Assembly (NCBI GenBank): GCA_044892505.1
Contig: CM097882.1
Location: forward strand, 323,268,001-323,332,000
Source of the DNA: Schmidtea nova
Lineage: Eukaryota
Direction: 5' to 3'
Length of the DNA stretch: 64,000 nt
The notes under the pieces are model-generated. The model was not told where the DNA came from. It did not search any database and was given only the letters and a program-made list of their open reading frames with translations. How positions within the stretch are numbered: the stretch's first letter is position 1; every line of letters starts with the position of its first letter. The position numbers were made by a program, and so were the translations under genes. Positions 28,184 to 59,721 of the stretch are shown here, one piece after another.

Positions 28184-30945
28184 TGTTGGGTTAGCGCAGT
28201 GGTCAGGAACAGTTAATAAGCAAGAACAAATAAATAAAATTAAATAATTAACAAAAAAAGTAAAGAAATAAAAGAAACGGTTAAAGAAAAAGAAAAACAA
28301 TAATCAAAATGTTAATATTACTATAAAAGAAAATGGTAACGGAAATAAAAGTACAAAATCCGTTAAAAAAGTACGAAATTATGAAAAAGGAAATAAATTA
28401 AAAAAATAAATATTTATTTATAAAAATAAATCAAAAATTTAAAAGAAAAACAAGGAAGTAAATATAATTAATCAAAACATATTAAATCAAATAATCTGGC
28501 CAATCAAAGGCTCAGATCGATTCTGATTGGCTGATTGAGTACTGAAATTAGTATAAAAGAGACGCTCAATTAGTTGAAAATAGAGAGACACAAAACGACA
28601 AAAAACTGTTTTTAACATAAACAAACACAGTTTTTTGAAACCGTTTCAACTCGTAGCAGACTGTCAACTTTAACCATTTGAACTAATATCTCACTAATCA
28701 ACTTTGAACTGTTCATTGTTTACTAAACCCAACTTGACAGAATTCTAACTTTATTCAAATTGTGTATCATAAGAATATTATTGTAAGTATTTGTGTTTCG
28801 ATTGATAAATATAAATTTTAAAAATTACTAATGCGTTTCAATTCTTGCATTCATTATGTTTTATTCGAAAGGAAATTTTTTTGAAGTTGTGGAGGCCATT
28901 CAGGTCGCCAACTTTGCGATGATTCAGCCATTAATTTTGCCTTTGGTGTAGAATGGATAGCGGGATCGTCGGCAATTGGTATTAAATAATTGTAAACTGT
29001 TGCAGTAGCAGGGTTCCGGAATTCTAATGTCACTCAGTTAATTCCTTTTGATAGATTCAAAGATGGTTGTTACTAGACTTCAGTTTTGACTAGCTTAATA
29101 ATTATAGAGCCGATTTAATTTAATAATCATAACTTAATAATTCAGTGTAAATCCGTTGGATACAGTTTTGTTCATTTTCCATATTCGCCTCTTCACTGAA
29201 CTTCAGATTTTACTCTACAGTGTTGACGCGCAAACAGATTTAAAATAAAAATCGAGAAAAGGAGTTTTAGACACCACACTGGTAGTCCACCATAAAATTT
29301 TCATGCCTCTCGCTGACTAATGAAAATCTATAACACTGAGTACTGTAATCATTTAGAGAATCAGACGAGCGAAACGCACTCTAAATTAAAAGCATTCGGT
29401 CACTTACCTCCCATGAGATAAAGTAACGACTGACAATATTAATTGCATTCCCTCGTATAGTACTCGCGATAAATAGCAAGGTATGCGTAGTTCGAACACT
29501 CCACAGCTCAGTGACATCACATCGTAACAGAGAACTCTGTGGGGTATGGAAATTTCACTTCGTCGCACGTAAAGTATAGTATTAAAACCTCCATTGAATC
29601 CACATATAACATTAATTGAAAACCCATTAGTGAGATAGACATCTGTTAATTATGACTAAAAGTAAGCGCGTAAACAAGATGAATAAACTCGAATAGATAA
29701 ACTCTAAAAACCCATTAGTCGACTGATGAGATATAGAATTCGTTAAGTGCATGCAATTAAATTAAATTTTCCTATACTAGTGTCAAAAATTAATAATAAA
29801 ATTTCTACTGATTGTGGTAAAGGGTCATTGCATAATTACGTCACGCCAAAAAGACCATTTTGACTAACCCACCCACCCTGTCACTCTTGGTCACATTTCC
29901 CTAGACCCACACACCCCCAATCGTGACGTCATTTTATTGTTCACGAAATGGGGGTAGCCTAGTGGTACCATAAGCCATTCAAAATATAAATTTACGGACA
30001 GTTGAAACAGATTAAAAAAAATTTAATGATTCAAACAAGTAAAATGAACTTATGGATTTTAAAATTATTTCGAGCACTTCATTTAAAATGTTTAAGCAAG
30101 ATCATTTTAAAATTTTTTTAAAATCGTAGCTTTATTAGTCATAGTTGTCCAGTCAAAGTATCAGCATCATTGTAGCATAGGAAGATTGTTGTAATTAGAA
30201 CTTTTTTGGTCTAACCGGTCCATTATAAAATACAACTAGAAGTGACGCCACGTTCAGCTCAACTCACTCACCCACCCACGTCACGTTTCGTCACGTTTTC
30301 AAAAAATTGTAAACGGTACCTTACCCAGAAATTTGTAGCGGACGACATCAGATATTTAATAAGATCAACGACCTTGGTCGAATAGTACCAAACACCACAT
30401 CGAATGGACCGCCAGTAAAGGGTAAAAAGTGAAAGAGGATCAGCTCGCAGAAGCGACAACGAAAGAAAAGATAATTGATGGAAAAATGATGAAATCGCAG
30501 GATGTGCAATAAACTTTTGTAATGCAAATAACGATCATAAACAAATGTATTACAACGAGTTGATTCTTCTTAATTTATAATTAAACAAAACTTAAATAAT
30601 AAAATAGGGCATATTGGACAAAGCACATTTAAACGGTAAGCTAGGAGTTCAGCGAACGCACTCTAAATTAGTGACTAGTGATAAAGGGTAAGATGGGATT
30701 AGATAAAGACCTTCTATTGGTCAATAAGGAACCCGCGAGAATGGTAGGATCGGGAGTAGTTTTTGCAAAGAAGCTCACCTGCCGATTCACATTCGCCTGT
30801 CATGTACATTACCAAGTTAAGTACATAGGGTATTTACAGGTACATGGACAGTAAGCTTTTTATGTGTTGTAGTGCGACCCAAGATAAACAAAATTTTATA
30901 AAATTAAAAAATACAAAAATTAAAATAAGCACTAGCAACCTAACA
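28184..30945 (+). mobile_element. Complete copy C of the coding-LTR family (2762 bp)
   Basis: TGTTGGG...CCTAACA with TTTT on both flanks; CTGATTGG and TATAAAAG at 28523-28560; GTAAGT donor at 28783; ORF2 remnant 30305-30475 (NCKRYLTQKFVADDIRYLIR..KRISSQKRQRKKR); structured module 30680-30870. Confidence 0.8.
29821..29945. mobile_element. Possible PIF/Harbinger-type MITE remnant inside copy C
   Basis: TAA|AGGGTCATTGCATAATTACGTCAC...CACCCACCC...CGTGACGTCATTT; a related partial copy lies at 30240-30300. Confidence 0.35.
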
Positions 30946-31744
30946 TTTTTATCATTTCCTTTCTCTTTAATCTTCATCTGTTCCCATGATGTCGGCTATT
31001 ATCTAACTAGTTCGATTTTTTAAGCTCCAACTTTTTTCGGTTATGGTGTCTTCAATCCCATTTTGTATATTAATAAATTAGATTGCAGATGATTGCAGAG
31101 TAGTTAGGTATATCAATGTTCGATAAATTTAACACGTTAAATGCCACAATGTTACAACAAATGTATCGGACAAAAGTATTTTTCCTTTTTTGGCTTTTGA
31201 ATTAATTTTTATGAACAAAATCAAAGTCAAAGTCAAATTTATAAAAATTAATTATTATTTTTTAGAGATAAAATTTGTTTCACGTGGCGTGGACGAACAA
31301 AATAAGTGTGAGACAAATATTGTCTCACATGACTTTCAATGTATTAACTAATTCTTATTTTAAATTTCTTTATGCAAAAGATTTTCCTAATAAATTCAAT
31401 CAATTATAGTTCTATCTTCCTCTATCATATTTTAATTTTGGTTTTTCTGTTATGAATGTTTGCGCCCAACCAATGAAAAGTCTTAAGGGACGGACTTGAA
31501 TGCATATCGCAATTTTCGACTAAATAAGACCAACCGCAAATATCCATTCAAAATATCCATTTTTCAATGACAAAGTATGTGTCATACACATCTGTCTATA
31601 CAAATTACTGCATAAATTTAATAAAATCAAAATTACCATAATTTTATTTTTACATGAAGAATTCTTTCAATTCTCGTCGATATTATCTTTAGCTAAATAA
31701 TGTGGAATAGGACGAAGCTCATGAGCTCTTATTTATCTTTAATA

Positions 31745-31975
31745 TGTTGGTGTATGGGTTATTAAAATACTCTGTTACTAGGGTTACGACGACCATGACA
31801 CTTCATGAATCACATGAATTACTCATAACTAACTACTCCTCGGCAATTATGTTGGTGATGTACGCGATGGTATGAGAACCGATAAGCAGGTGACTTTCAC
31901 TACCAAGACTAATCCTCATTATATTCTTCTTGCGGGTTCCTGACTGCCGATAAGTCTTACGTCGAGTCTTCATTA
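31745..31975 (-). mobile_element. 3-prime structured module (I) of the coding-LTR family
   Basis: GACTTATCGG..GGAACCCG..GTCACCTG..GTACATCACCAACATAAT...GTTATG; terminus CACCAACA at 31745. Confidence 0.7.
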
Positions 31976-32821
31976 TTATCTGCATATGTATTGTGGGTTC
32001 ACACTTTGATTCAGAAAGTTTACTTAGTCTGCGTTAGGAGCACATATCAACTATAGCCTTTAATTGCATATAGTATGAAGCATACTATAAGGTCAGCCCT
32101 TCCAAAATCCCAAGCATCATTAGCAATTCACTACAGCAACCATGGCAATCAGTTTATGCATCCAGACTTTCTCAGTTGGAAAATTAAGAACAGTTATAAC
32201 CTATTTTACAGCTGTCGTTGCACTGCGTGCGTACACCAAGTTATTTTTTCATGTATGTTTTTAATAACCGATAACTAAATACTGAGGTTCGGAGATTTTG
32301 TTGTACACTTTAATTATGATTTTATTTAAAGAGAAAAAGTTTAAGTTTAAGAAGAAAAGCGATATTTTTTGTTCGTTTAGGCTATCAGTAGCCTTCCTCT
32401 GCCTTATCGCTACACCAATGACAGCAATTCAGTTCGATAACATTCAAATCTTTATTAAATTTCACATGTTTGTTTGTTCGTTAGAGTCAAATTTTCTAAA
32501 TTAATTTTGATTTACTTTGATTTTATCTATTTAGTTGAAATGTTTCATACAAAAAATTGTAAGATTTTAATATTATTATAGTATATTATTTTAATATGTT
32601 GGGGTTCTATAAAATATTATTCTAAATAAAATAATGTAAATTGATTAATGCATACAAATTCGATCAATTCCTCACAGTAGAAGCACACAATCGGTCCAGA
32701 AAAAAAACAATAAAAGCACATAGATTCGTGCATACTCAGCTAGAGAAATTATTTCTTTATTTAAAACCTGATTGGAACAATAAGCGACTTAAATAATTAA
32801 TCAAAAATTTATTAAAATTTA

Positions 32822-33453: not shown

Positions 33454-36235
33454 AATCTGTTGAGTTAGTACAACCTATAAAAATAAGTATTAAATCGAAA
33501 ATAATGAAATAGTAATAGAATAATTAGGAACATAAATAAAATGTAAAATAATTAAAGAAAACTAAAAAAATAATAAATTATAATGAGCCGGAAAATAATA
33601 ATACAAAAGAAATAAAATAAAATTGAATAAAAATTAGAAAACCGCTAAGTATATACAATTGACCGAAAAAAGGAATTAAATTAAGAATTAAATAAAAATA
33701 AATCAGAAAAATAAATTAATAAAAGATGATTAAAAGGGGAAGGAAAAAATCAAACTTCTAAATCAATTTAATTGAGTATCCAATAAAAATACGGCTAAAA
33801 TTTGATTGGTTATTTGAGCGCCAAAATCACTGAATAAGGACGGCTCAATCAGTTGACTCTAACAGTTAAACTTTTACAAAGACTAGTTTTTGCTTACTGT
33901 AAAACTGTTATGTACAAGCTTACTCTTGAATATTTTGCGAATCATTTTGGAAGATATTTGTAAGAAGATTCATTTGTAAGTATTTTCTGTTTAACCCATT
34001 TTGCCTGAATTTTTTCTCAAAATTTATAATAATTTCTTCAAATCATAATGTTATATGATACATAATATTTAAAATTTTTTTTTTGCTTTCGTATTGGTTT
34101 TATACGAGTTTTTCGAGATGTTCCATATTTGTAACACTGGGAATAATATTAAGTAGGCGTTATAAAGCTAAATTAAGAAAAAGGTTATTTCAACACAACT
34201 AAACTTATAAAATAGCGTAGATAGGTAAGTCAAGGTATGTAAGTATAATTATTTATTTACTTACATGTAGCTACATATAATAAACATTTTATGATAATCA
34301 ATATCTTATAATGAACATCTTATACTATAGTAGAGGATAGATAGCTATCTAGATCAAGCCAAATTCTTTTTGAAAATAACATAATTAAACATAGAAATTA
34401 CATAATTATATATATATTTTTGAAAAATTGCATAATTGTCCATTTTCATTGTGTAATTCTCAAATAAAAATACATAAATTGCATAAGATTTTTATAAATC
34501 TATATATTTATGATCTAATATTAATATAAATCTATTATACAATACTATATATCGATTCATATGATTATTACATAATATTAAATATTGATTCATACAGTTG
34601 TTACGTAGTATATTATTATTATTATTAATAATAATAATAATAATAATAATAATCAAAAAAAAATAAAATAAAAGTAAAAGTTTTTTGTTTAATAACATTT
34701 TTCTACATTTATTTTTTGACAAATACTTGTCAGAAATTACAAAATTGAAATCAACTTCAATATACAGAAACTTTGGGATTTGAACCTGGGCATTTTTTAC
34801 AATTTTCAATCAAAATTTTTTTCAACAAAATTATTATTATAAAACTTTTAAGCAAAAACAATAAAATTTTTTAAGATATGATAGTTATTAAATAAATTTA
34901 CTTGAAAAGAAATACTCATATAAATCTCACATATAAAAGTTAAGAAAAAATTGATCTATGTAATTTTTATATACAAATTTCAATGGATAAATATTACTTT
35001 AACTGAATTTTAGCACTCAATTGTTTTTTCATGTTATAGAGACATAAATGTTTGAATACAGATTAGTATCGAATTTTTATTGTAAATGGCAAATACATAT
35101 AAATTATTTTTAATGACTTCAAATATTTGTCTTAAATATATTTTAAATGGACAAACACATGTAAATATTTTAACTGGGTAAATAGAATTTTATAAACAAT
35201 TTTATCTCTCAAATTTTCTAATAGATATTAAAAATTTCTAAACGATTTCAATGTATTAATTTCAAGATAGATATCAAACATACGATCAAAATAGTTTGAT
35301 ATTTAAGAATTTTTTCTCAATACAATAATATTTTTAAAAAAAGATATAATAACTAAATCCGAGAGTTTTTATTACACAATAAGAAAAGTTAAAAATGAAT
35401 TTCTTTTCAAATTATTTTAATGATATCAAAAAGTAGATTATCAGAGATGGGACAAAATTATTTTAAATTAATTATGATTTATTACGTTAACTAAATTCTA
35501 CAAAAGACACTAGTGAAAAATCAATTTTTTAAACAAAGTTTAATAATAATAATAATATTTAATACTAATAAAAGATTTACACAGAAAAAATATTATTATA
35601 AAATATATAGTAGTAAAAAGACAAATCTTTATATGCAAAACTTTATTAAAATCCAAAAGAAAGTCTTGCACTTTTAATTTTCAAAATTGGTGTCATAACA
35701 TCCTTTTGATCGAATTTATAGCCCTGAATTGTGATATCAATATAACAATTTTCCATATCTTTGAATTCTATTTCTTAAAATACATCATGGAATCTATTAT
35801 GACGAACATTGATAAACATGTTTTCATTACAAAATAGTTTTAAAACTTTATTGACTGTGATGGCATTTTCCTTAGATATTTTACCATAAAGATTATAATA
35901 CCAAGTTTTACTCAGTTTAACTGAAAACATTTACTTAATTTCATTTATCAATATATAAATTTGATGATCGAGATACAATTTAACTGGTTTCACATCATCT
36001 TTGATCTAACTGGCTTGATAGATTCATTGTTACTAAATAATTTTAATCCTTCCAAAATTATATTAAACACAAGAGAACTTTTTATAATACAAGTTAATAA
36101 CCAAACAAAAGATGAATACTTTAAAATACTTAAACAAATACAACTAAAAACATTTAAGATTTATAAAAACATACAAAAAGAATCAAAATATAAGACTAAA
36201 AAGCCAAAATATGAAAATAAAATTTTATTCATTAA

Positions 36236-36516
36236 TCAAATGATCTTTATGCATCTTTCGAGAGCATAAAGAAGCTCCTCCTTATCTTTTAAAAGCTTCC
36301 AATTCGGGCAGCATTTACAATGAATGCAACAAATTGGTTCTAATTTGATGTTAGTCCTTTCTAAATTTCTTTTGTGTTCTAGTATTTGTTCGATATCGAG
36401 TCCAGTAATTAATACGATTTTTAATTTTACCAAATCCGGTGCCCAAAAGATTAAATCCTTCATTTTATAAGGATACATCTTACTCACGGTACCAACCAGT
36501 ACGTTTAAAAGTGTTT
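36236..36516 (-). CDS. Putative terminal exon of unknown function inside the piggyBac-bounded segment
   Basis: ttttAG acceptor, then ~93 open codons ETLLNVLVGTVSKMYPY...PICCIHCKCCPNW...ERCIKII*. Confidence 0.4.
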
Positions 36517-36582
36517 CTAAAATAAAATAAAGTAAAACAAATCAAAAATAAATAAACTAACCATCTCACTCATTTTGATAAT

Positions 36583-36711
36583 NNNNNNNNNNNNNNNNNN
36601 NNNNNNNNNNNNNNNNNNNNNNNNNNNNNNNNNNNNNNNNNNNNNNNNNNNNNNNNNNNNNNNNNNNNNNNNNNNNNNNNNNNNNNNNNNNNNNNNNNNN
36701 NNNNNNNNNNN
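36583..36711. other. Assembly gap
   Basis: N run. Confidence 1.
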
Positions 36712-37423
36712 ATTATTGTTATGGTCCTTATTATTATTATTATTATTAAACAATTGCGGACGTCCTTGCGGACACCGGATAGTCCCCCCTATGTTCGATG
36801 CTTGTCAGCAAACTAAAATAATTTGATCCGGAGAAATAATAATTAAAATTATAATGCAAAAATTCAGAAAATAAATCAAGAAAGCAAATTGATTAAAAAA
36901 CAAATTGCCAAAAACAGTAGGAATAAAGAAAAAAATAAGAAACAAGGAATTGCTTAGGAAAAAACAAACAATTATGAACGCAAAATGGAAGCAAAGTAAA
37001 TCCAAGTGTAATTGTATGAATGCGGAATTAAACGCAATTTTATCATTGTGAGTACCTTTCAATTTTTACTTTCTTTGTAATAAAGTTTTATTGTTATTAT
37101 GAATTTTGTTTTTGTTACATATTAAATTATATTGAATAAATATACAGTCTCGCAGTCACAACAATTTAACAAACAACACAGCACACACCCCGAGTGTCCC
37201 AACATAAATCTGTGACTCTCTCGGGCTCTACAAATCTCTCCCTCAATACACATCCTACACACTATATTAACCAAAAACATTATTTCTACACAATACTAAT
37301 TGACAACTTCAATTCACAACATTCATCACAACATAATCCTCCATTAACCTTAACAATTCTCAATAAAATTCCATTAGAACAATATAATCCTCCATTAACA
37401 TATAACAATATAACAATATATAT

Positions 37424-37429
<6 letters not shown>

Positions 37430-37494
<65 letters not shown>
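37430..37494. repeat. (TA)n microsatellite
   Basis: Pure TA run. Confidence 0.97.
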
Positions 37495-37500
<6 letters not shown>

Positions 37501-38426
37501 TATGATTTACTTGTTTTGAATGTCTTACGGGTCTGTTTTTAATTAGTTTGTTTTGCACGTAAGTACGAATAGAAGTGTAAGTGCCCGAGAGAGTCTGGAG
37601 TTATCAGTGTGCCAACACTCGGGGTGTGTGCTTTGTAATGTGGAAGACAATAATAAAACAAATAATTAAATAAATTAATTATTAACAGTAAAATTGTTAA
37701 GACAATAAAAGATTAGCTATACAACTCTATAAAAGTTACTTTAGTATGATCTTTCTTATCAACCTCTCTCTTAGGAAGGATGGGGTGTATTGAATGGTTA
37801 GGTGGAACGGGATATAATTCTTTATTTTAGAATACACTGCTTTGCCTATCACTAGTTTCGGATGGACAGAATTTATTTAATGTGTAGATGGAATGGAAAT
37901 ATAATTGGAAATATAATGGAAATATAACGGAAATATACGGGATATAATTCTCTATTTTGGAATACTCTGCTTTGCCAATCACTAGTTTCGGATGGATGGA
38001 ATTTATTTAATGTCTAGATTCTATAGTAATTCTGTTTATTTTCTTGATTCTGTTTTTATTTGGACTTTAGCTTTTTATCTTTTTTAAATTTTTAATAGCA
38101 GCCGTTGACGAGGGAGATTGTAACTTGTAAAGTTGAATTTTCTTTCAGCATAATTTTTAATTTCTAATTTTTTAATCAATTTTTCCATAGCTTACTATAG
38201 TTTCTTTCTATAGTAAGCTATTTGATTTTGCAAATTGAATTTTAAATTAAATTTTGGATTATTATAATTCTAAATTATAATAATAATAATAATAATAAAT
38301 TTACACACAACGAAATAGGGGGTTCCCGGTGACCGCAAGGGCACCGTCCATAACAATGACGGCGCTTACCTCATCACACGAGAATAACAATAATCATAAA
38401 ATAAATTAAACAATGAAATATGACAT

Positions 38427-38464
<38 letters not shown>

Positions 38465-38599
38465 AAATATTTCAACACACACAACTCAATGAAAAACATA
38501 CACAAATTATGCATACATGTGAAAACGTTAGGTAATGCTTACTAAAGTAACTAGTATTTCATCATCCTCGATCTTTGACTTAACTCACGATAATCAAAC

Positions 38600-40180
38600 G
38601 TTTCAATGTCAAATATTACACATGACTAATATATTGAGACATAACGGATTTACATTACTCAAAGTTTTAAACCTTTTCTGATTCATATTTGTAATTATGT
38701 TTCTTCGATAGCTCATATTAATAAATTAGGGTTCTGATATCAGCAATATCTGTATGATCTAAGAATTACAAAAAATATTTCACAATATTCAAAAGTTTTA
38801 TTTGGAGGATTTACAATAAAAGATTTAATAAAATCATCGCATTTAAACTACGTAGATCAAGCCATGCATGATATTGAATGATTTTCAATTGATTTTTAAA
38901 AGTTAATGACAACATAGATAATTTATTGATAAATGTTAAAAATAATCAGAAGAAAAATGGTGAAAAATCCATCTTTCTAATTTGTTGAGTAATTAAATAA
39001 TCACATTGTTATCTATATTTACCAATACTTTAATTTTACATTAAAAATTAATTTTATATATTTTAAATTCAGTAATTTTCAGACAAAATAATTAATTTAG
39101 TAATTATCTATATCAAAAATTAAAATACTACTAATTCTACATTGAAAATAAATCATAATATTATAATTAAATTTAGTTAGCATGACTATTTATTTGGCAA
39201 CAATTCAAATAAAAATTTATTCTAAATAACTAATTTTTGCTAAAATCAAATACAATTTATTCTGACTAAATTTTAACATAAGTATTATTTTAGAAATACA
39301 CATTGATTCCATTTTAAATTCCATTTTAAAATTTTCAACTTTTTCTCAATTAATATTTTATCAAATTATTGATTTCAGTAAATTTAAAATCTATTTAAGA
39401 TTGAAACTAATGTCAATTTAATCAAAGGTTATGGCTAAAATTCAGATGATTACAGTGATTATAATAATTTTAGAGTATACAAATAGAAATTCAAATAACT
39501 TTCAAAGAATTTTCATGACAATTTTAGTTAATTAGAGGATATTTATCTATTTATGAATAACTTGTCATAAAAAAGAATCAGTTACAAAGAAATCTTGATT
39601 AAAAGATATATTAATTCTTCAATTTGATCAACTACTTACTAATTAATTCTTTATTTAAATGAATGGAAGTTTAATTTTTTGTGAACCAAAACTGATTTTA
39701 CTTTGATATTTCAAACTCATATTGTAGTAAAATTATTTGAAAATCAAAATGTCATTCTTAAAATATAGTGAAAATATTTCATACTTAAAACCTAATGAAT
39801 CTTACCAATTAAAAATCTCATTGCAGTAAATAAACTATAATTTAAAAGAAATTTATTATTATTACCATTTTTCCTATTATCGACATTCAAGTTTAAAAAG
39901 TACTATAATATAGTAACTAAAACCCGTCTAAACCTCGATATTCAAGTGGTTAGAGACACTTTAAATCTTTCATTGAAAATCACTAATTTAATAGAATTAA
40001 TGACTATCGAATAAAATACATCGAAATTCTCTTCAATAAATATACAACTCAATAATTCACCATTAAAATTCATTTCACAATGATTATTTCCGTATGAAAA
40101 ATGTTTCCCTCTTAGTGAATTTCCTCATTTACAAAGATTTACTCCATCTAAAAGGATTTCATCGATACACTAAATTAAAT
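38600..40180 (-). pseudogene. Possible degenerate LRR-type host gene fragment (cargo)
   Basis: Codon-like stretches with stops, including HLNFSHN, INISFNQ and CDDFIKSFIVNPP-like fragments. Confidence 0.3.
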
Positions 40181-43100
40181 TTTATTCCCCCATAATTTTA
40201 TCGTCAATGATATTACCCTAATTAACATTGAAATTAATTAAAATAAAAAGATTATTCAAAATTTCATGTATTTAAAAATAATTAATTAATTTTCTCAAAG
40301 ATAAAATAGAAATAAAATAGAAATATTCTTAAAAGATTAAAAAAAGAAAATTACTCAAAAAGGAAAAGTTACTGATGCAATCTTAACTTTTATTGCAGCA
40401 TGTATAATGGAGTGGGGGTAAAAATACTAAATGTTCCGATATCGGAACACTGGGCAAAAAGGGGTTAATATAATATTTTTTTGAAGTTAAATGCGTTATT
40501 TTTTGTTATATTCATGTTCTTTAAATTTTAGTAATTTAAAATCAATAGAATTTTTGGAAGTTGGAGATGGTTTACTGGGTCGCCAGCTTCGCTGTAGTCC
40601 GACTTTTAACTTTCGAGTGTAGAGTGGATGGTAGAGCAACCGACCAAAGATAACAGAATGGTAAAACTAAATTAATGAATATTGAAATCAGTGGTGGTAT
40701 GGAACGTCAGTTTTCCACGTCAGCAACTAGGATTAAATTTTAGTAAACTATAACATAGTAAAATCACTATAAAGGAATAGAGATAGGAACCTGCGTACGC
40801 TACTTGGTTATTACCTGAGGTAACCCCGGTAGTAGGGAGAAATAATCTGGTTAATTCGAAGCTTAAAAATTGATTATCTATATGAGATTGGGGAAAATCT
40901 TTCAGATTAAAATCCATTAGTTGACGAGAAAACAATTGTTTAATACAGTCCATTAGTAGGTGCTCAACATTTTCGTTGAAAATCCATTAGCGACGGGTAA
41001 AAGTTAATTAACTAAATTCATTAGCCGGGGAAAACTTCTATTCGTTTAGGACAACCTAAATTGTTGACTGAAGTAAGGAAATTTAATAATGAAGTCAAAA
41101 TATCCATTAGTTAATGATTGCGTAATTCGTCTGTCGTAGTAGGACAGTGTAAGGAAATGATTGTACTTAATTGATTGACAGATAAAGTCTGTTTTTTAAA
41201 ATAAATTATGATTAAATAATTTAAAGAAATCTGAGGCCTAAAAATATGTCATTAATGTAAAAATTCAATATTTATTTCCCACTAGCATTAGAACTGACGA
41301 TGGCACAGATATACGATCAAAAATATCATGAGACCCAAGGGACAGGGTCCACAAGAATCATTTCAATCATAAAAAAGGGTTCATAGAAAAATAGTATGAA
41401 AACTTTCTGGTAATGGCGATGCCCTTAAAGACAAATATTTCTACCAAATTGTTACAATAAATATTCGCCGAGCATGAGGCGCACTTCAGACGAACGGGGA
41501 GGCGCCGAGCTTTAGCCTCCATCGTGAAAGTCCCGACCACATCGTGTGACATAGGGGACCAGAATGACCTCATCGATTCTGAATACGACTATCCACGGGA
41601 CACTCCAAATTATGCTGTTTAAAACGACGTACCATTGACTGAGAAAGAGCATATTTTCACCTGCGGAGATGAATGGAGTGAAGGACAAACTTACCCGAAT
41701 ACGCCAAAGTAATGAAGATCTAAAGATGGAATTGGAAGCTATCAGGATAAAGCTGCGCAATTGCAAACGTTATTTAACGCAACGGTTTGTTGCAAATGAT
41801 TTGAAAGAGGTAATTCAACCCCTTACTTTTTCGAAATGGTATCCGACCACTGTCTAAACGGAGAATTCTGACAAGGTACAGGAAGAACCGAGAAAGATGC
41901 CCAAGAAACGCAAGAGGATTAGTTCTCAGAAACGACAAAGGGCGAGAAAACAACTGATAGCCAAGTCAAGCGAATCCGAGAGTGAACAATGATAAACATT
42001 GATATACTCTGTTGAGTGATTGTTCTAATTATATGTATGATATTGTGCTTTATTTGGTTATTTGTGCGAGCTTTGAATAAATTAAAATCAATTGAAATCA
42101 ATAAAGATCAACGAAGAAAATGTACGACAACTCAGAGATAAGTTTTAGACTGTCTTGTGAGATAAACACACCTTGAATGAGTGACCCGTGAAAGGGTGAG
42201 TAGGATAAAATTGTGAAAACCTTCTATCGGTCATTAGGGAACCCGTGAGAACGAATGAATCGGGAGTAGTGTTAATGCAGAGGCCAACCTGTCGATTCAA
42301 ATTCGCCTGACGTATGCAGTACCAACGTAAGTACAAAGGATATATACGAGCATACGAGAGGAAAGCTTTTTATGTGTTGTGTTGCGACCCTAGACGAGTA
42401 AAGATAAATGTGATTAAATTGCATAAATATTTCAAGCACACAACTGCTGGGCCAGCCAACACACAAAATCAAACCCTAGAAACAGGAATAAATCAATAAA
42501 ATTAACTTTTTTTTCTCGGATCACTGAGAAATCTGAAAATAAAATAATAGAATCATTAAATCAATTAAAAACATAAGAAATAATACTTCAGTTTTGCGAG
42601 GAACAACATACTTCAACGATTCTAAAATAACTAATAAAACAATTTTAAACACTCGAGAGTTCAATTAAGGGGAAAACAAAAATAATATTCAGTAATCATA
42701 ACGAATTAAAAACAACCAAGTACCAATTATGAGCCAACAGATGAATTCTGATTGGTGAGGACTACAAGCGGAATGAGTATATAAACAGTGGTTATTTAGT
42801 CAAAAGGAACACCTTTTTCACCTTGTGTAGAATTTTCACATTGAGACAACTGTTTACTTGTAACTACGTTGGAGGCGAAAATAAAGGTATTGTTGTAATT
42901 TGATGTTGTTAATTATATTCATCCTCATGATATTTTCTAAGCTCAGTATGATGGTAAGGGCACGTCCCGTAAATCTAACGTCTCGACGGGCGATAATGGG
43001 CCTCCCGACCGACACTCTTCGCAGTGTTGGCGGTGCGGCGTACGATAACTAAAATGAACGGGGAAGGGGAAAGATCGCACATTGGGGCATCGAAAGACAT

Positions 43101-43254
43101 TCTATACCAAAAATTATGTTACCGATGAATTGACAACTCAGTAACTAAATACATTTATTCAACACACATCACGAATTCGATATCGAAAACGCGAGGATAA
43201 AGAGATCTGCATAATAATGATTAGGATGCACTATAGCGTGGGAAGATAGGTGTT

Positions 43255-43785
43255 ACCAACTTTAAACTACCAAAACCCTAGGTAGAAGAACTATCATGTT
43301 CCAAGGCAATAATGCGCATTGAGATCACTAATCGGCTAGATCCGACTAACATCGACAATTAGAATTTTTCAGTATGATAGCCAATAGGCTCGGAACAAGT
43401 ATTACTCGTCCCATGAGCAGATGAAATAGACCAACTTTAAACTACCAAAACACTAGGTAGAAGAACTATCACGTTCCAAGGCAATAATGCGCATTGAGAT
43501 CACTAATCGGCTAGATCCGACTAACATCGACAATTAGGATTTTTCAGTATGATAGCCAATAGGCTTGGAACAAGTATTACGCGTCCCATGAGCAGATGAA
43601 ATAGACCAACTTTAAACTACCAAAACCATAGGTAGAAGAACTATCACGTTCCAAGGCAATAATGCGCATTGAGATCACTAATCGGCTAGATCCGACTAAC
43701 ATCGACAATTAGGATTTTTCAGTATGATAGCCAATAGGCTCGGAACAAGTATTACGCGTCCCACGAGCAGATGAAATAGACCAAC
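43255..43785 (+). repeat. Three near-identical 175-bp tandem units inside copy B
   Basis: ACCAACTTTAAACTACC starts at 43255, 43430 and 43605, with a partial start at 43780. Confidence 0.97.
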
Positions 43786-44526
43786 CATCTAGGATGTTGA
43801 AATAGAGATTCCATACCCCACCAAATTGAGCGCTCCCACTTACGAAACTGAATGTATAAAACATAGCATGGAGTTTGAAGGAAAACATAGAGACATTTGG
43901 TATGATGATACCCTGTCCGCGAATTGTTGACGTATGAGACGAAACGATGCATGATGTTAATATGACTGAACCAGGAGATTGGGATGAATGATCAATTGAT
44001 AAATATACCCTACGATTGAAAGACTTGAGGTCGAACATCTTATTTTTTCCATGAAACTGAGAATGAATTTGCTCAGAACCGTCGTAGACGACGAACTACG
44101 TCTCTTATTGGCAACAGAAACACTATGAATGCCGAGAAAATCGATACGAAATGTTGAGCGAGAAACCTAAATTAATACGAGGGAAATAATTATTCCAAAT
44201 CAAATGGTTTGTTGTGGGCTATTGAATAAGATCCAATCAGTCTACGGGAGAAATAGCCTAATCAATAAAATGAAATCTAACTGTTGCGACTCAGTGAGAC
44301 AGGTGGTAATTGGGAACAGGGAATGTGATTGTTTGGAATGAGTAAACTCACGCGTTTGTCTGAATGAGGGTATGAATTGTCTGAAAGAGATATACAAACT
44401 GTCTGAAAGGTATGACTGCGAAAGTGATGTCTGCATAGGAACAAGAGAATAAGGAGTAGAAGTGGGAAACCATCGACTACTACAACCCAACGGAGAAGGA
44501 GAATAATTTGATTTCCTCATTATATA

Positions 44527-45096
44527 ATGCGCGCTAACCTTTTCTCGGAGATCGCAAACATCCGTTACCTGGATGATGGCCATATTGAACTCAAACTTCA
44601 ACGGTCCACAAACGTACCCAGCCTCTTACAAGCTGAGATAGAGCGTCATCTCCGTCATTGGAGAAGGAAATTTCCCCAATCAGCGTCCAGAGATTCAGAT
44701 GAGGAATGGGAGATGCAAGTCAAATGGGTAGGAGACCCTTCATGGTCAATTTTTGAAGTACCAAATTGAAGCCGAATACGCAACTCCGTGACTCAAAGGC
44801 CAAGGTGGCTCCTGCATTTCAAGTTCATAGACCCTTCGATATTACAATGACTGGGTTACATTCTCCTCAGTCCACCTCGCAATATCTATACGGAAGAGGT
44901 TCTATCGTATCCGAATCTACCATGTGGATTTCAGGAAGCTTGGAGATCGAGATCGTCTTGAGCAACGTTTGTACAATTCCAGGAAGTTCTCATATACGAC
45001 GATCAACTGTGTTGGGTACCGAATCCGATTTTCTACCACTAGGATGGAATCAAAAAAGGAGATAGTCATTATACCCAAGATTGGATCGACTCGTAA
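44527..45096 (+). pseudogene. Copy B ORF1 (Trp-rich family; 190 codons, 4 in-frame stops)
   Basis: LQAEIERHLRHWRRK, GDPSWSI and FIDPSILQ*LGY align with the copy G ORF1 motifs LQQIHQKMWAWRRE, GCASWPI and FIPASTFKELGF. Confidence 0.7.
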
Positions 45097-45375
45097 TGTC
45101 GATTACGGGACAGCCAGTTTCGTTGTGTATTATCGGATTGTTTGTTTAGACACTAATTAAATCGTTATCTTTCAATTTGATGTTGCTTGATTGCGGTTTG
45201 TATGAATACAAGTAGGGAAAGTGTTTGAATGAGATACGTGTCGGAATGGCTCGTAGGAGCTTAAATTAAAAAAACTCTATTTGATAGATAGGGAAAAAAG
45301 GAGGGGAATCCCAAAATTAATCGAATAAAAATTAAATTAAGAAAAAGTAATGAGTGTATCCTATTATAATTATAG

Positions 45376-45945
45376 ATGGAAGTACTAAAATCATGCATAG
45401 ACACCGACGAGCGACGATAGTTATATCGACGAATTCACCTCCTCGAGGGTAAAATAAATCGCCAGGATCTGGAGCTGGAGGAATTGAAAAGAACTTGGTT
45501 CAACCCTGAAAAAACAAAAGCGATATTTAAGAGTCGAGACAGAGTGGAAAGGGCGCTGGAGGAGCAGGCCCGGGAAACTGCGGCGACCAAACTAGAGTTA
45601 AATTGTTGCCTACGATCCTTAACTAGCGAATTTCTAGAGACTCATCTAAAGACGCAAATACGAGAAAACACATTTGAACGTTGGGTCCCAACTCGACGAG
45701 AAACCGTAGAAACATAGACCGAGAATCAACCCGCCGCAAAGATGCCTAAGAGTGTCGAAACAGGGGTAGCGAGGGACATGGTCAGCGAACCCTTCAAGGT
45801 AAAGAAACGCAATCGGTTAGGAGCCAAAAGGCACCGAGAGCGAAGGGCACTCGCGAAGAGAATAGGGATCGAAGTAGATCTCCAGAGTGGGTTAACCGAA
45901 AACCAATTAGTCAACGTGATAAACACTAGTATCTTTTTGAATTAA
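45376..45945 (+). pseudogene. Copy B ORF2 (coiled-coil/Arg-rich family; 2 in-frame TAG)
   Basis: tatAG|ATG start; WFNPEK, AATKLEL, FERWVPT, RNRLGAKRHRERRALAKR and LTENQL all match copy G ORF2. Confidence 0.8.
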
Positions 45946-46302
45946 ATAAAGGTTTTGTGTTAGTTCATGCGTTTTGTTTGTTTAGCGTATGCATGAGAAA
46001 AGAGAAGGATGTGGAGAGTGAACGAATGCACAAAGGGTGAACATTCATAGAAAGGGACCGAAAGAAAACCACACGAGACCTATCGGTAGTGGTGGACCTG
46101 TAGCCTTAATGGGGGAATAGTAGTCTTTCGACTGCTCTCCTGACCTATTAAGCTACAACGCTTAGTGCAGTACCAACATGAGGCGCAATTAGGGGCAAAT
46201 CATGGGCACGAGCGAGGAAATGTTTTTATGTTGGCCAGGTGATCCTAATCTTTCCAACCAAACACACCTGTGTTTGAACAATATCAACCAACACAACTAA
46301 CA

Positions 46303-47579: not shown

Positions 47580-47581
<2 letters not shown>

Positions 47582-47636
<55 letters not shown>

Positions 47637-47646
47637 CATACACACA
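47582..47646. repeat. (TA)n/(CA)n microsatellite
   Basis: TA run followed by CA. Confidence 0.97.
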
Positions 47647-48890: not shown

Positions 48891-48949
48891 TGAAAAATAT
48901 CTGCAAGGTAACATCATTTTATGTTTCACTCTATGTCCTTGAAGGACTG

Positions 48950-49914: not shown

Positions 49915-50060
49915 GGAAACATATTTAAGATTAATTATATAGAACAACATTTGAACGCATTAGTTATATTGTCAATAGAAACAGAATTTGCAATGAATAT
50001 TGATTATACTGATATAATTAATACTTTTACTGATAAAAAGTTAGAAGAATATTATAATAA
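49915..50060 (+). pseudogene. ZMYM1/PRKRIR-type hAT transposase C-terminal fragment
   Basis: TYLR...EQHLNALVILSIETEFAMNIDYTDIINTF matches the YLRSTMxQxRLxxLAxLSIE motif. Confidence 0.7.
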
Positions 50061-51370: not shown

Positions 51371-52508
51371 TTAAAGAAGCATTTCACCTTTCTCAGCCAA
51401 CAAACGCAATCTTTTGTCTGAATATATTTGTCCCGCTCCACTAAATAGTTGTTCATTTGGGACACTTAAAGCTGGAGGGGATAAATATTTCCGCGCAAGA
51501 ATAGATAGTGCACCGAATTGATTCAGATTTTGGCGCCAACACAAGTATGGGTCTTCGTTTCGAATTAATAATGGCGCTAACAAATAATTATCAATCATTT
51601 TCAACATTTCTGCCGCTTCATTTGCTGATTCAACCGATTCACTGGTAGGAAAATGATTCCATAGCCAAGATTTTGCAAGTGGTGCAGATTTCCGGACTGC
51701 ATTTTTTTCATTTACTGTCGTCACAGAAATATCATCCTTTTTATCTACTTTAATTGCTGCCACCTCTTCCTTCAACCAAGTTTTTGCCATCAATACGGTT
51801 TCATCACTGTCAAATATCCGATCTTTGAAACGAGGGTCGAGCACCGTGGCCAGAACGAGTGTTTTACTTTTTGCAGTATCTGAAAACCTCGTGTTTCTCA
51901 AAACATTCCGTTATATAATGTCCAGTAAAACTTAAAAGTGAAATTCCAGTTGACGGATCAGACCATACATCAGTGGTAAACCTAATATCTTTCTCGAAAT
52001 AAATGAGTGCCTTTATTTTTGATTGAACTTTTCGGTACATGTTTGGAATTAATTATGTTGCAAAAAATTTTGGGCTGGGTAACTTATATCGCTTTTCTGC
52101 CTTCTCCATCACACGTCTGAACCCAATATTTTCAACCATGGTGAATGGTTGCGCATCAACGCAAATCATTTCTCCTATTAATCTGTTCCAAGAGAGTGCT
52201 CTTGATTCATTAAAATCCCAAGCGATTGAGCGATCAATTACTTCTGATATAATAGGTTGGTATGATAAATGTCCAGACGTAGATTCCACCCTAGATGTTG
52301 TTTTTTTTGTCGTTTTGAACTTTAAATATTCGATTTCATGCTTATATTTCAAATGACTTATCAAATTAGTTGTCGAATAGGACTTAGGCTCCTGCCCACC
52401 CCGAGAAACTGCCTCATTGCAGACTTAGAAATTTGCTTTGCTGACATCTAGAGAATTAACGTCGAAAACGGCCCAAATATTACTGGTCATCATCGATGGT
52501 GTTGGCAT
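51371..52508 (-). pseudogene. BED-finger hAT transposase (ZBED1/ZBED4-like) with catalytic-core deletion
   Basis: IWAVF..VCNE..STTNLISHLKYKH (BED); QPFTMVENIGF; FTTDVWSD; ATVLDPRFK; LARKYLSPPALSVPNEQLFSGAG. Confidence 0.9.
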
Positions 52509-53393
52509 GGTAAATTTCCAATTGTAATTAAATAAATTTAATCGAATTATTGATTTAAAAAATTAACGGAAACCAATAATGATTAATTTCAAAATGTAAA
52601 CAACCCAGACATTCTATACGGTCTAACGATATATGTTTTCCATTATCATCAATATATAGAACAGAATTTTCACATATATAATTATAACGGTGATTGTTTT
52701 TCACTATATATTTTGATTCTACAGCATTGATAGTAAAAACCATGGTCGCCGGATCATATTATTTGAAGTTTATGTCGTTAGATAATGCAAATGTAGTATT
52801 TTCATTTACCCCACTTAAAAAATATCGGTATTATACCTATCGGCACATATATTTCCGGCCGATACCGATATTGCCGATATGAAGATGTTGGGGTTGTGGA
52901 GGGGTTGTTAAAGGTGTATATGCATGTCAAAGTTCTAGGGATTCTCCATCCACAGCCCCACATAACTTTATCGTCGACACGCGTATGCCCTTGACTATTC
53001 CCTACTAGTCAAGTTGGTACTGCATACGGTGGTGGAAAAATGATGGGCAGGTGAGCTTTGTTGCCAAAACTACTCCCCATTTATCTTCCCTCGGGTCCTT
53101 GCTGCCGATAGAAGGTCTTACGCATTTACATTCTATGGATGTTCGTTTCCCACTGAATTTTATACTACATATCCTTATGATCTATCACACGCTTTTCCCA
53201 ATTGCACTCTCCTTCGCTGTTCTACGAGCCTACGAAACTCCCGCTGCTAAGTCACGGTCGGTGGAGGTTTTATGACGCGATTTTTATTTCTACGATTTAC
53301 CGGTGTTGTCTTATTTTATTTATTAAAAGCACACGATGAGAGACAAAATTAAAAAAAAAAAACACTTTTATTAAAACAAAAAAAAACAGGTTG

Positions 53394-53999
53394 TTATTTG
53401 ACATTGACGTTTTCGTACGCAAACTCCAGGCTAATCTCCTGAATCAACTCTTCTTCGGTCAAGGTGTTTAAGTGGTGGATTTGCTCGTCCAGTCGCTTCG
53501 CAAATTCTCGGCGACGACGACGCTGTCGCGATCCCATTCGGTGTTTTCGAAGCTCTTGGTTTAGGACAGGTGCTGACGCCATTGTTCTCGATGGATCACT
53601 GTGAAAAGTAGGCAAATCGTCCGTTACAAGAGTCGGGGCCATGATGATCCCATCTTCCGTTCCGCATGCGACATCTTGATAAGTATTTTGCGTCCAGCGC
53701 TGAGCGGTAATCGGCCGGATTAACGCGCGTAATTCGGAGTCGATATAACTTCTTGTTACTGCATTTAGGCAATTACGCAGTTCTCTCTGGACGGCGTCGA
53801 GTTCTAATTTAGTTGCGGCCAGTGCTTCCTGCATTCGCTCGAGTTTTTGCGATTGACCCTTCATTTGCTCGGGTGAGAACCACTTCGCTCTCAGTTCATC
53901 ATTGGCTACCGTGAGTCGCTTGATCTGCCGCTGCTGGTCCCTCAACTTCCTATCTTGGATTTGTCCCATGACTCTCCTAGAGTTTTCTGAAGTCGGCAT
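53394..53999 (-). CDS. Novel 201-aa coiled-coil protein with Arg-rich motif (family ORF2)
   Basis: Intact ATG ORF with heptad-like N-half and RKHRMGSRQRRRRREFAKR. Homologous remnants occur in copies A, B, C, H and probably K. Confidence 0.8.
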   Translation of the reverse strand: MPTSENSRRVMGQIQDRKLRDQQRQIKRLTVANDELRAKWFSPEQMKGQSQKLERMQEALAATKLELDAVQRELRNCLNAVTRSYIDSELRALIRPITAQRWTQNTYQDVACGTEDGIIMAPTLVTDDLPTFHSDPSRTMASAPVLNQELRKHRMGSRQRRRRREFAKRLDEQIHHLNTLTEEELIQEISLEFAYENVNVK

Positions 54000-54336
54000 G
54001 ATGTCTGAATGTTATAACGATAAATTCGCTGGAGGACCTATCAACAATGTTATTTTATTTAGACGACTATTTACGATTGAGGAGCAAAATGCGTACTACT
54101 GTGTTCAAGTATTAAATCTTTACACAAAAAAAAATATTTTGCTATTTAATGATTGGAGACTCAAAATATTTATTTAACTATTTTACACTAGTGAAAGAAT
54201 TTCCTACTGACTGTAACATCTACAACACTGGATATTAATAAGTTTCTCATCTATATTGCAACACTATTAATAAAATGGAACACTCAGATTGCTCTAAAAC
54301 ATTTATTTAATTTAAAATAGGTGGCCACCGATTTAA

Positions 54337-54813
54337 CTATCCATCTTCGGTCATTTTCCCTCGGTACGAAAATATCGATCTGATTTGTAGATGAGAGCTG
54401 ATTCCAGTGGAGTTGGGTGAGGCTTGCTGGAGACGGGTCCTCTCGGCTTCCCGAAGGGGTCGTATTGCCGTATGGAAAGTGAACCCTAACTCCTTGAATG
54501 TGGAGGCTGGAATGAACCCCCAATAAATCACACAGCTCGGGAATCCCCGTTTATCTAACATCAGGACGAACCAGGCGGCGTGCCATGATTCGAATTCCTC
54601 GTCTGGGATGATTGGCCAGCTAGCGCAGCCTCGGTACCACACGTGATGCCGTGGGTGGTCCCATACTGTAAAGGGACATGCTGTTTCAAGCTCTCGGCGC
54701 CATGCCCACATTTTTTGATGTATTTGTTGCAAAATCTCAAATGGAGCCGGCTTTAATGGGCTGATTCGGGCTCGTTCTCGTCGTTTTTTGATGGTGAATC
54801 TGTGTTTGGTCAT
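54337..54813 (-). CDS. Novel 158-aa Trp-rich protein with basic N-terminus (family ORF1)
   Basis: Intact ATG ORF 5 nt after a tttAG acceptor. Homologous remnants occur in copies B and H, and possibly A. Confidence 0.72.
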   Translation of the reverse strand: MTKHRFTIKKRRERARISPLKPAPFEILQQIHQKMWAWRRELETACPFTVWDHPRHHVWYRGCASWPIIPDEEFESWHAAWFVLMLDKRGFPSCVIYWGFIPASTFKELGFTFHTAIRPLREAERTRLQQASPNSTGISSHLQIRSIFSYRGKMTEDG

Positions 54814-55760
54814 GGTACTAAAACGATGATGAATTTTATAATAGTTAACAATTTAAATCAATGATTAATTATATTAGATGTTATCTCTCATCGTGATGCC
54901 TTTATTATTTGCCTTCCCCTTAGACCTTAACTGAAATCAAGAAAAACTGTTGCTCGTTACGGTATACATTACTCTCGCGTCTGCTTAGATTTATCTATTT
55001 ATGATCAATAATATAGTCGAAAATTGGTGATTTGTCTGCGTGGACATCGAAACATTGGTATCTCAAAACGGAAACTCTCTCACATCATGTATCTCCTAGC
55101 TTACTCGGAAAACGCCCCTTTCGTATCAAATGCGGTCGACATAATTTTCCAAGGTTTATTAGGTGTTTATTTAGCAACTGTGCTGTGGTGAGGGTGAAAA
55201 ATTGTGCCTCCTCACAGTCAAAAATTCTTTCCTATCCTACATCGTTAGACTTTATCCGAAAATCGTCTCCTCTGTAGCTAAAATGATTCGAAAAATAATT
55301 CCCCGGATTTGTTGGGTGTCCCATGTGCAAATTCTGTCAACTACACAAAAAAGTCATATTTTGTTATTCATTACTTTACCGTGTGTGGAGCCCTCGAGCA
55401 CCACGCCACGGACGGACACCTTGGTAACCTAAAGCTCCCAGTCGGCGCAAAATTAATATGATCATTATATAGTTTAAATGCAAACATGATAATTCACAAT
55501 CAATAAATTATAATGTGATAACATATGATTACAACAATATCAATAATAAGCATAAATATAACAAAAATACCTAAATTGAATCCCAAAAATTTGTTCAGTT
55601 AAAATCGGTAAAACAGTGATCGTCTATTGAAAATCAGTCTTGTTAATCTCAACTTAGTGGTGATCTCAGTCTGAACAATCTAACAATCTAATGTGAATCT
55701 AACAAAGTCGCAATCTGAACAAAGTCTAAGTCTAAATTTTAGTCTGATTTTATGAAAAAT

Positions 55761-55805
55761 CTGATCAGTATTTATACTGATCAGTCGTGTCTAGACCGAC
55801 CAATC
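55761..55805 (-). promoter_or_regulatory. Pol II core promoter of copy G (CCAAT box plus TATA inside an inverted repeat)
   Basis: Minus strand CTGATTGG...CTGATCAGTATAAATACTGATCAG. The equivalent CCAAT/TATA spacing recurs in copies B and C. Confidence 0.6.
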
Positions 55806-56638
55806 AGGTTTGGCCAGTTTCATGGTGGGTTTGATTATTATTTTGTTGATCTAATTAATTTTTATTTTTTAGATTGGATTCTTTCTCGGTGGTCTGGGTT
55901 TCAAAAACAATTATTCAATAACAAGTACTTTTTATTTTGTTTTAATTATTAATATTAATATTTTATTTGTTTTTAGATGTCTCCTGGGCCAGTTAATATT
56001 TAGAAATGTCTTTAATTCGTTTATTTTTATTTATAGTTTGTTCCTAATTTATCTATATTTTAACTATATTACTCTTTTCTTTTAACTTATTATTCCCCTT
56101 TTTACCTTATTTTTTCTCTTTTTTGTTTTAATTATTATACTTTTATTTCACTTTTCCCTCTATTTGGCTGGCCCAACAAAGATATCGGCACGCCGATATA
56201 TCGGTAGACGTCTATAAATATGTTTATTTATTTTTGTTAATTATTAAATGAATCAATTAATAATAACGGTTTAGTGAAAGTTTAGTAACATAACTCTTAT
56301 GAAATATATCTCAGCAAACATCTCATACAGAAATTCATTCCAATGAGTAAAATGATCAACGAAAATCAAGAACAAAGTTAAATCTATTAATTACGTATCT
56401 TGCAAATATATTATAGATTTTAACTTCCGAGAAATAAAATTCTTTTATTGTAGTATAATTGAAATTTATAAACTTAATTTGTAATATATTAAAATCAATT
56501 TCGGAATCTAATTCTTTAATTTAATCAACTTTTCACATTGTGAATTTAAGCAACTTAGAATTTTAGCGATATTGTTGGGCTAAACAAAGAGCCCAAAAAG
56601 TTAATAAAGGAATATTGGGTTATAAATGAGTAGTCGGT

Positions 56639-59717: not shown

Positions 59718-59721
59718 GATG

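Follow-up and report, generated by a model that had tools for sequence, protein, structure and literature searches.

A stretch of 64,000 nucleotides from Schmidtea nova (GenBank assembly GCA_044892505.1, contig CM097882.1, positions 323,268,001 to 323,332,000) contains a family of mobile insertions that have retrovirus-style ends and carry a conserved protein gene. This whole stretch is called the window here, and positions are counted from its first letter. Its G+C content is 30%, its observed/expected ratio for CpG is 1.09, and it includes four runs of N. Four complete units of the family, named C, A, B, and G, are present. They confirm that the family is real, very diverse, and composed of insertions of 2.8-3.9 kb. 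With moderate confidence, the units are taken to be solo LTRs (long terminal repeats) from an uncharacterised, very diverse lineage of LTR retrotransposons, the LTRs of which are several kilobases long and bear a gene.

Ends, flanks, and insertion sites

All four complete units have TG...CA ends with an inverted terminal motif of 6-8 bp. The termini are TGTTGGG...CTAACA in C, TGTTGAG...CTAACA in A, TGCTGGG...CCAACA in B, and TGTTGGG...CCAACA in G, which is read from the minus strand. Seven of the eight termini fit the pattern TGTNR, the exception being the start of B (TGCTG). Each of the four is bordered by a target-site duplication (TSD) of a fixed 4 bp. Ends of this kind, with a duplication of constant length, suggest insertion by a retroviral-type DDE integrase.

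The pattern of ends plus TSD proves nothing by itself, because a generic scan for a TSD, TGTTR...YAACA, and the same TSD returned 110 pairs in this AT-rich window. The ends of the units are fixed independently of the TSD by the limits of homology between C and A, by the common start of B and G, and by the constant distance from a common 3' module to the end. With relaxed scoring, C and A can be aligned from base 1 of both (C 1-394 to A 1-399, 62%) and again over their last ~500 bp (64%). B and the minus strand of G have a common start of 13-15 nt, TG[C/T]TGGGCCAGCCAA. The 3' ends of all four units lie 45-75 bp past the module. With the ends fixed in this way, the chance of one 4-bp match is ~0.006 at the base frequencies of the window, and the match was observed in four out of four units. 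Little else can be aligned as DNA. At the same relaxed scoring, G has 130-160 bp in common with C and A, near the G end on the minus strand. Unit B has no alignable DNA with the other units in whole-unit self-comparison, relaxed scoring included.

Uninterrupted paralogous sites were found for two of the insertions. Unit B is nested in A, 5 bp plus the TSD away from the 3' end of A, and the 3' end of C represents the state of A before the entry of B. For G, the site is a second copy of a hAT end (51113-51218), to which the two flanks of G align and on which they abut within 2 nt. Thus, B and G are discrete simple insertions with 4-bp duplications.

Unit A is less complete as a record. As assembled, it contains the nested unit B, AT-rich material of no assigned origin, and an assembly gap at 36583-36711. 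The 500-base flanks on the two sides of this gap show no overlap or alignment (best local score 11), and continuity across it cannot be established from them. Because the gap lies in its interior, unit A cannot be given a firm length or content, and only its two ends serve to define it. None of the open reading frames (ORFs), alignments, or features relied on here spans the gap.

An earlier sequence-only reading of this stretch had proposed the four complete units with their positions and TSDs, and the termini and flanks bear this out. It had also named TG...CA ends with a 4-bp TSD as hallmarks of a retroviral-type integrase, which is supported in all four units. The further partial copies, which it had put at about eight, are seven copies of the module and one fragment with ORF1 only.

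Conserved parts of the units

The units begin with a purine-rich head. Their first 300 nt contain 48-59% A and 59-71% purine, compared with 35% and 50% for the window. At about +240 to +400, four of four units contain a promoter block made up of CCAAT, ~20 nt, an invariant TGATTGG, ~25 nt, and a TATA-like box. In three of the four, the TGATTGG is part of a full CTGATTGG, which occurs seven times in the window where 1.2 occurrences are expected. A profile of the block (nhmmer) detected exactly the four units (E 1e-16 to 5e-20), with no other match in the window below E 1. The block is thus kept in units that are otherwise unalignable at the DNA level. The combination of CCAAT, CTGATTGG, and TATA is presumably a form of the RNA polymerase II (Pol II) promoter that joins NF-Y (inverted CCAAT) with TATA.

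The first of two reading frames considered, ORF1, is intact in G. Homologues were identified in five copies in the window, and those of A, C, and the fifth fragment are partial remnants with at least one break each. The aligned part of ORF1 in B has one in-frame stop and no frameshift. No module was found downstream of the fifth fragment (12896-13153). The copies are 26-64% identical as protein and cannot be aligned as DNA. The ORF1 match is confined to one frame. Matches of the non-coding module, by contrast, are spread over many frames and the two strands. Pooled identity at codon positions 1, 2, and 3 is 51, 57, and 34%, with third positions saturated. This pattern indicates long purifying selection on the protein.

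The AlphaFold model of ORF1, made with the window copies, has a mean pLDDT of 72. It contains helices at residues 4-38 and 43-105, a disordered segment at 106-143, an arginine-rich helix at 144-179, and a last helix at 182-198. From this model, the product could be an oligomerising, arginine-rich, nucleic-acid-binding accessory protein. Fold searches in PDB and BFVD turned up nothing beyond generic helical resemblances, none better than E 0.05.

The second frame, ORF2, is intact in G. The ORFs at the equivalent place in B are not significantly similar to it (BLASTP E 0.45), and ORF2 was rejected as a gene common to the family. Its AlphaFold model, made from ORF2 alone, has a pLDDT of 40 and is unusable. 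Neither ORF1 nor ORF2 has a relative among 5.8 billion clustered proteins, a family in Pfam, or a match among PDB sequences. In addition, ORF1 was absent from protein records in an exact look-up, and its back-translation had no match in IMG/VR. An ORF1 profile found no true relative among 1.84 billion representatives, its two matches being artefacts of internal repeats. These blanks weigh little, because a Penelope-like ORF in the same window matches nothing above 50% identity either, and the source genome is therefore missing from the collections.

AATAAA or ATTAAA follows directly after ORF1. The distance from this poly(A) signal to a conserved U/GU-rich motif, TATGTK, is 263-324 nt, and TATGTK lies ~75 bp before the terminal CA. 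The best conserved DNA of the units is the 3' module of ~230 bp, after which the CA end follows. A profile search of the window (nhmmer) identified 11 copies of the module, those of the four units plus six further full copies and one partial copy. Pairwise identities are 36-71%, with one pair at 85%. Thus, the window holds many old lineages and not a single recent burst.

A hairpin derived with RNAalifold is kept in 10 of 10 full copies of the module. In it, 83% of the cells are paired, compared with 66% in column shuffles, and none of 1000 shuffles reached the observed value. Pairing drops to 43-60% when the partner column is slid, and covariation is 0.63 compared with 0.33. The hairpin was derived from the same alignment that was used to test it, which gives these values some bias in its favour. 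A second hairpin is present when seven copies are aligned and is lost with ten. A stable fold spanning the distance from AATAAA to the GU-rich motif was rejected, the folding-energy z being only -0.3 to -1.75.

Searches of the module against Rfam, at the gathering cut-off and at E up to 5, returned only low-complexity, microRNA-like noise. No hammerhead or other ribozyme was matched in the Rfam searches, and a tRNA search found none. Pattern scans for the module gave no match in IMG/VR, two in JGI metagenomes, and one in GTDB genomes. All three are GC-rich, prokaryote-like chance matches.

The partial copies are represented mainly by their 3' ends (Table 1). For the seven with a module, a TG start with a matching TSD was sought within 7 kb, and none was convincing. 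Three short copies (7771-8005, 8902-9135, and 57481-57552) end in ...CCCACCA and not in ...AACA. The first two are 1,130 bp apart and adjoin the Penelope-like ORF, which is on the opposite strand. They were considered as the LTR pair of one small element, and this was rejected because they lack a TSD, a primer-binding site (PBS), and a polypurine tract (PPT). A direct repeat of 110 nt (22630-22739 and 23768-23877, 98% identity, 1,138 bp apart) encloses the module copy at 22868-23077.

Table 1. Positions of the units, their parts, and the partial copies in the window
Feature	Positions	Strand	Remarks
Unit C, complete insertion	28184..30945	+	2,762 bp; TSD TTTT at 28180-28183 and 30946-30949
Promoter block of C, with CCAAT, CTGATTGG, and a TATA-like box	28490..28583	+	nhmmer E 5e-20
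ORF1 remnant of C, with about 30-55 codons still identifiable	30215..30394	+	similarity to ORF1 copies
3' module and end of C	30690..30944	+	nhmmer E 8e-42
Unit A as assembled	33458..46302	+	12,845 bp; TSD AATC; only two ends assignable
Promoter block of A	33778..33863	+	nhmmer E 1e-16
ORF1 remnant of A, central ~70 codons only	41639..41854	+	35% identity to G, E 6e-12
3' module of A	42202..42427	+	nhmmer E 1e-40
Unit B, complete insertion	42445..46293	+	3,849 bp; TSD CAAC
Promoter block of B	42712..42810	+	nhmmer E 2.5e-16
Tandem repeat inside B, 175 bp x 3.0	43255..43785	+	97% matches
ORF1 of B, broken	45421..45942	+	tblastn with G ORF1: 28% identity, 167 columns, E 6e-15
3' module and end of B	46054..46292	+	nhmmer E 1e-28
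Unit G, complete insertion	52886..56178	-	3,293 bp; TSD AAGA (plus-strand letters); ORF1 and ORF2 intact
3' module of G	52901..53133	-	nhmmer E 3e-42
ORF1 of G, intact, 201 aa	53394..53999	-	all-helical model: coiled-coil-like helix pair, disordered linker, arginine-rich helix
ORF2 of G, intact, 158 aa	54337..54813	-	no relative in window or protein collections
Promoter block of G	55746..55839	-	nhmmer E 4.5e-18
Short copy, barely more than module	7771..8005	+	E 1e-36; ends ...CCCACCA
Short copy	8902..9135	+	85% identical to 7771-8005, identical start and end points
ORF1-only fragment of further copy	12896..13153	-	47% identity to A remnant; at least one stop
Partial copy, module and 3' end	18467..18658	+	E 6e-31; abuts assembly gap at 18660, 3' flank unreadable
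Partial copy, module and 3' end	20738..20996	-	E 6e-37
Partial copy, module and 3' end	22868..23077	-	E 2e-25
Partial copy, module and 3' end	31746..31979	-	E 1e-37; ends ...CCAACA at 31745/6
Partial module, last ~70-100 bp only	57481..57552	-	E 2e-5; subgroup of 7771-8005 and 8902-9135

Proposed solo LTRs and the alternatives

The LTR-like appearance of the units comes from what their ends share and what they do not. Neither a terminal direct repeat nor a long terminal inverted repeat (TIR) was found inside C, B, or G. The inverted-end score was at the level of shuffles apart from the match of 6-8 bp, beyond which the ends are asymmetric. The order of promoter, presumed transcribed part, poly(A) signal, and structured end, the conservation of just the promoter and the last segment, and the RNA-type covariation all fit the U3, R, and U5 regions of an LTR. 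From this arrangement, the LTR identity of the units can be inferred. The sequence-only reading had proposed an order shared by all units. The head, the CCAAT/TATA block, ORF1, AATAAA, the module, and the CA end have held as common parts, and ORF2 has dropped out of the list. Its division into U3, a very long R, and U5 agrees with this layout. The borders of these regions, including those of the very long R, are suggested by the order of the conserved motifs.

Solo LTRs of this kind would have arisen when the two LTRs of a retrotransposon recombined and the gag-pol interior was lost, leaving one LTR behind. Each LTR would be a self-contained Pol II transcription unit. The purine-rich head would serve as U3, and CCAAT, the inverted CCAAT (CTGATTGG), and TATA, at about +280 to +400, as the LTR promoter. 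A long transcribed part with ORF1 would come next, with AATAAA directly after it. The module would be U5, alone or together with the end of R, and its presumed place of action is the RNA or first-strand stage. It could possibly take part in 3'-end formation, or it could place the start of reverse transcription beside the primer site of the full-length element.

A number of observations weigh against solo LTRs. Among the 11 copies in the 64-kb window, there is no like pair that encloses an interior. Of the 10 3' ends that can be read, none is followed by a TGG-type primer site, and the 5' ends are not preceded by a purine tract. A Pfam scan covered 158 stop-to-stop segments. These comprised every six-frame segment of at least 58 aa that remained after low-complexity filtering, together with a small number of listed ORFs. 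No gag, protease, LTR-type reverse transcriptase (RT), RNase H, or integrase domain was identified in these segments. Apart from those of a Penelope-like element, a hAT, and a pogo-like transposon, the scan matched no family. The earlier statement that no copy here has a PBS, PPT, gag, pol, integrase, or LTR pair is therefore confirmed within the window. In addition, 3' modules outnumber recognisable promoter blocks by 11 to 4 in the window. This excess could be due to detection bias, nested insertions, or real truncation.

Other objections concern the gene and the R region. We know of no precedent for an R region of 2-3 kb. An AATAAA placed so far from the cap would terminate most transcripts within the 5' LTR. 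Conservation of a protein among LTR lineages that diverged long ago is also unusual, since rapid evolution and a lack of coding content are the norm for LTRs. A gene conserved inside an LTR together with a kilobase-long R would be odd even if the units are solo LTRs.

Comparison with known LTRs gives a mixed picture. Most LTR retrotransposons have 5'-TG..CA-3' termini and TSDs of 4-6 bp (PMC12440569), and the start pattern TGTNR is that of Gypsy LTRs (PMC2836005). The units resemble solo LTRs of the Ty3/Gypsy and BEL types in their TG...CA ends and TGTNR start, in the shortness of the inverted motif, and in a TSD of 4 bp. They also have an upstream CCAAT/TATA promoter, a downstream poly(A) signal, and a conserved last segment before CA. 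Unlike these solo LTRs, they are 2.8-3.9 kb long, carry a conserved protein gene, and imply a kilobase-long R. Ty3/Gypsy-type and BEL-type LTRs also differ from the units in that those in the window lack a paired copy, PBS, PPT, and gag-pol.

The length of the units has precedent in the multi-kilobase LTRs of Ogre and Burro. Plant Ogre LTRs are 1.9-6.5 kb. In the planarian element Burro/GYPSM1, the interior reaches up to 25 kb, the total with its LTRs exceeds 30 kb, and there are thousands of copies (PMC6431247). Ogre and Burro/GYPSM1 were compared with the units through their published descriptions. On that basis they are alike in the size class of the LTR and in internal tandem repeats, as in unit B. 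The host genome of Burro is also more than 70% A/T (PMC11410931), similar to the window with its 30% G+C. Genes inside the LTRs of Ogre and Burro/GYPSM1, unlike ORF1 in the units, are not reported in PMC6431247.

Two viral systems resemble the units in single features. The LTR of mouse mammary tumour virus, a vertebrate retrovirus, has a superantigen ORF in U3 that is expressed from upstream promoters. It is similar to the units in that an accessory protein gene is housed within the LTR. In the units, however, ORF1 is downstream of the LTR-like promoter, and the proteins are unrelated so far as searches show. In deltaretrovirus LTRs, a long folded RNA lies between the poly(A) signal and the site of cleavage, and an arginine-rich protein of the virus binds to this RNA. 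The units have AATAAA 263-324 nt before the U/GU-rich motif, the structured module between the two, and an arginine-rich helix in ORF1. Unlike the viral RNA, this interval has ordinary folding energy (z -0.3 to -1.75), and there is no relation in sequence or fold. The resemblance to deltaretroviruses can be taken as an analogy only.

A rather unlikely alternative is that the units are DNA transposons without a transposase of their own. Their movement would depend on an integrase-like DDE transposase acting in trans, of the Ginger1, Ginger2, or IS481EU kind, and ORF1 would be an accessory gene. The head and the 3' module would then be asymmetric subterminal binding regions, and movement would be by cut-and-paste or copy-paste. 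In Ginger1, Ginger2/TDD, and IS481EU, the termini are TGTNR or TGT...ACA, and an integrase-like transposase produces TSDs of 4 bp (PMC2836005, PMC10045372). The TGTNR termini and 4-bp TSDs of the units match Ginger1/2 and part of IS481EU. The occurrence of all copies as singletons, with no LTR pair, PBS, or PPT, also suits a DNA transposon. A promoter and a poly(A) signal inside the ends are the natural layout of a transposon gene, and the terminal motif ACCAAC recurs within the module. However, these known elements have longer TIRs and a transposase gene of their own. The inverted termini of the units are 6-8 bp, compared with about 40-270 bp in Ginger1 and 50-180 bp in Ginger2, and their targets (TTTT, AATC, CAAC, and AAGA) are neither the CCGG/CCGT of Ginger1 nor the RTATAY of Ginger2 (PMC2836005). 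Membership in Ginger1/2 was rejected on these two grounds. IS481EU is recorded from parabasalids only (PMC10045372). No such transposase accompanies the units, an integrase-like ORF being absent from the window, and the covarying hairpin suggests a single-stranded (RNA) stage.

It is less probable again that the units are a new, LTR-less class of integrase-inserted elements. Such elements would consist of a promoter, ORF1 (with ORF2 in some), and a structured 3' cis element, and they would not be remnants of larger elements. They would be propagated by enzymes acting in trans or by an unrecognised activity of their own proteins. This would agree with complete copies that are all singletons with intact ends, and with the protein-level constraint on ORF1 in every lineage. 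The absence of relatives of ORF1 and ORF2 from 5.8 billion clustered proteins, 1.84 billion representatives, Pfam, PDB, and the fold libraries also favours a new class, as does a module outside all Rfam families. However, missing relatives are weak evidence when the source genome is absent from the collections, the Penelope-like ORF itself having at most 50% identity to any public protein. RNA started at the internal promoter would not include the head, and a retro-copy of it could not rebuild the ends without an LTR-type scheme. The proteins of 201 aa and 158 aa, with helical or unconfident models, show no features of enzymes. The earlier reading had offered two possibilities, solo LTRs or a new class. 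Solo LTRs are now the best reading, and the new class has been neither supported nor excluded.

The units are very improbable as retroposons inserted by target-primed reverse transcription, in which the module would be a 3' tail held in common with a Penelope-like or LINE partner and the partial copies would be 5'-truncated. This would account for the module as the best conserved part, for the 11 to 4 ratio of 3' ends to 5' parts, for three short copies that hold little besides the module, for the two of them that adjoin the Penelope-like ORF, and for a hairpin that covaries as RT-recognised 3' tails do. It fails on the four complete units, all of which have defined 5' ends, an inverted terminal motif, and a fixed 4-bp TSD. 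Further evidence against it is that no 3' end has a tail of poly(A) or simple repeats, that hammerheads and other ribozymes had no match, and that the Penelope-like ORF is on the opposite strand to the short copies beside it. Fixed ends, a fixed TSD, and the absence of a tail or ribozyme likewise set the units apart from LINE-dependent and Penelope-dependent retroposons in general.

Two further structures were considered. Non-autonomous LTR elements (LARD and TRIM) do not describe the units, which have no PBS or PPT and, in C, B, and G, no terminal direct repeat. A mini-LTR or split-direct-repeat structure inside the units was also rejected.

Neighbouring elements and significance

The Penelope-like ORF (9357-10880, minus strand) encodes 507 aa, in which an RT and a GIY-YIG domain were recognised. 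Relatives of 843-877 aa align with it over their residues ~360-877, the N-terminal third being absent from the ORF, and the closest public protein has only 50% identity. A 72-nt inverted match (9194-9265 and 15564-15635, 98.6% identity) is present on either side of it, and the second arm abuts an assembly gap at 15636. The two arms could be the TIRs of an element of ~6.4 kb that encloses the Penelope-like ORF and the ORF1 fragment, or they could be an assembly artefact.

Remains of hAT elements were identified at 49332-52424 (minus strand), 50091-50120, 51113-51218, 52810-52885, and 56179-56214. They contain a BED finger and a C-terminal dimerisation domain, in pieces. Several hAT-type ends are present, with TAGAGGTCTACCGATAT and CCGATAT-rich subterminal repeats, and unit G lies ~30 bp inside one of them. 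A pogo/Tc5-like transposase (58607-59784, minus strand) is also in pieces, with matches to DDE_1 (E 1e-16) and HTH_Tnp_Tc5 (E 1.5e-9). Beside these pogo-like remains is a direct repeat of 225 nt (59719-59941 and 60157-60381, 95% identity). A low-complexity ORF of 321 aa (47857-48822, plus strand) has no family match and adjoins an (AT)n tract at 47582-47640.

If the units are LTRs, they would represent a lineage in which the LTR itself is the gene, with its own promoter and a protein under selection, while the surrounding DNA has diverged past alignment. A conserved, folded, RNA-like element would sit at the position of U5. The rare cases of accessory proteins encoded by LTRs would be extended to invertebrate retroelements. 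Each solo LTR would remain a potential expression unit dispersed in the genome. If the units are not LTRs, they would show that ends of the integrase type can delimit a minimal element that has no enzyme, and this would bear on the kinship between LTR retrotransposons and integrase-type DNA transposons. In the annotation of genomes, units such as these would be overlooked or misfiled by LTR finders that depend on pairs and by TIR finders that depend on long TIRs.

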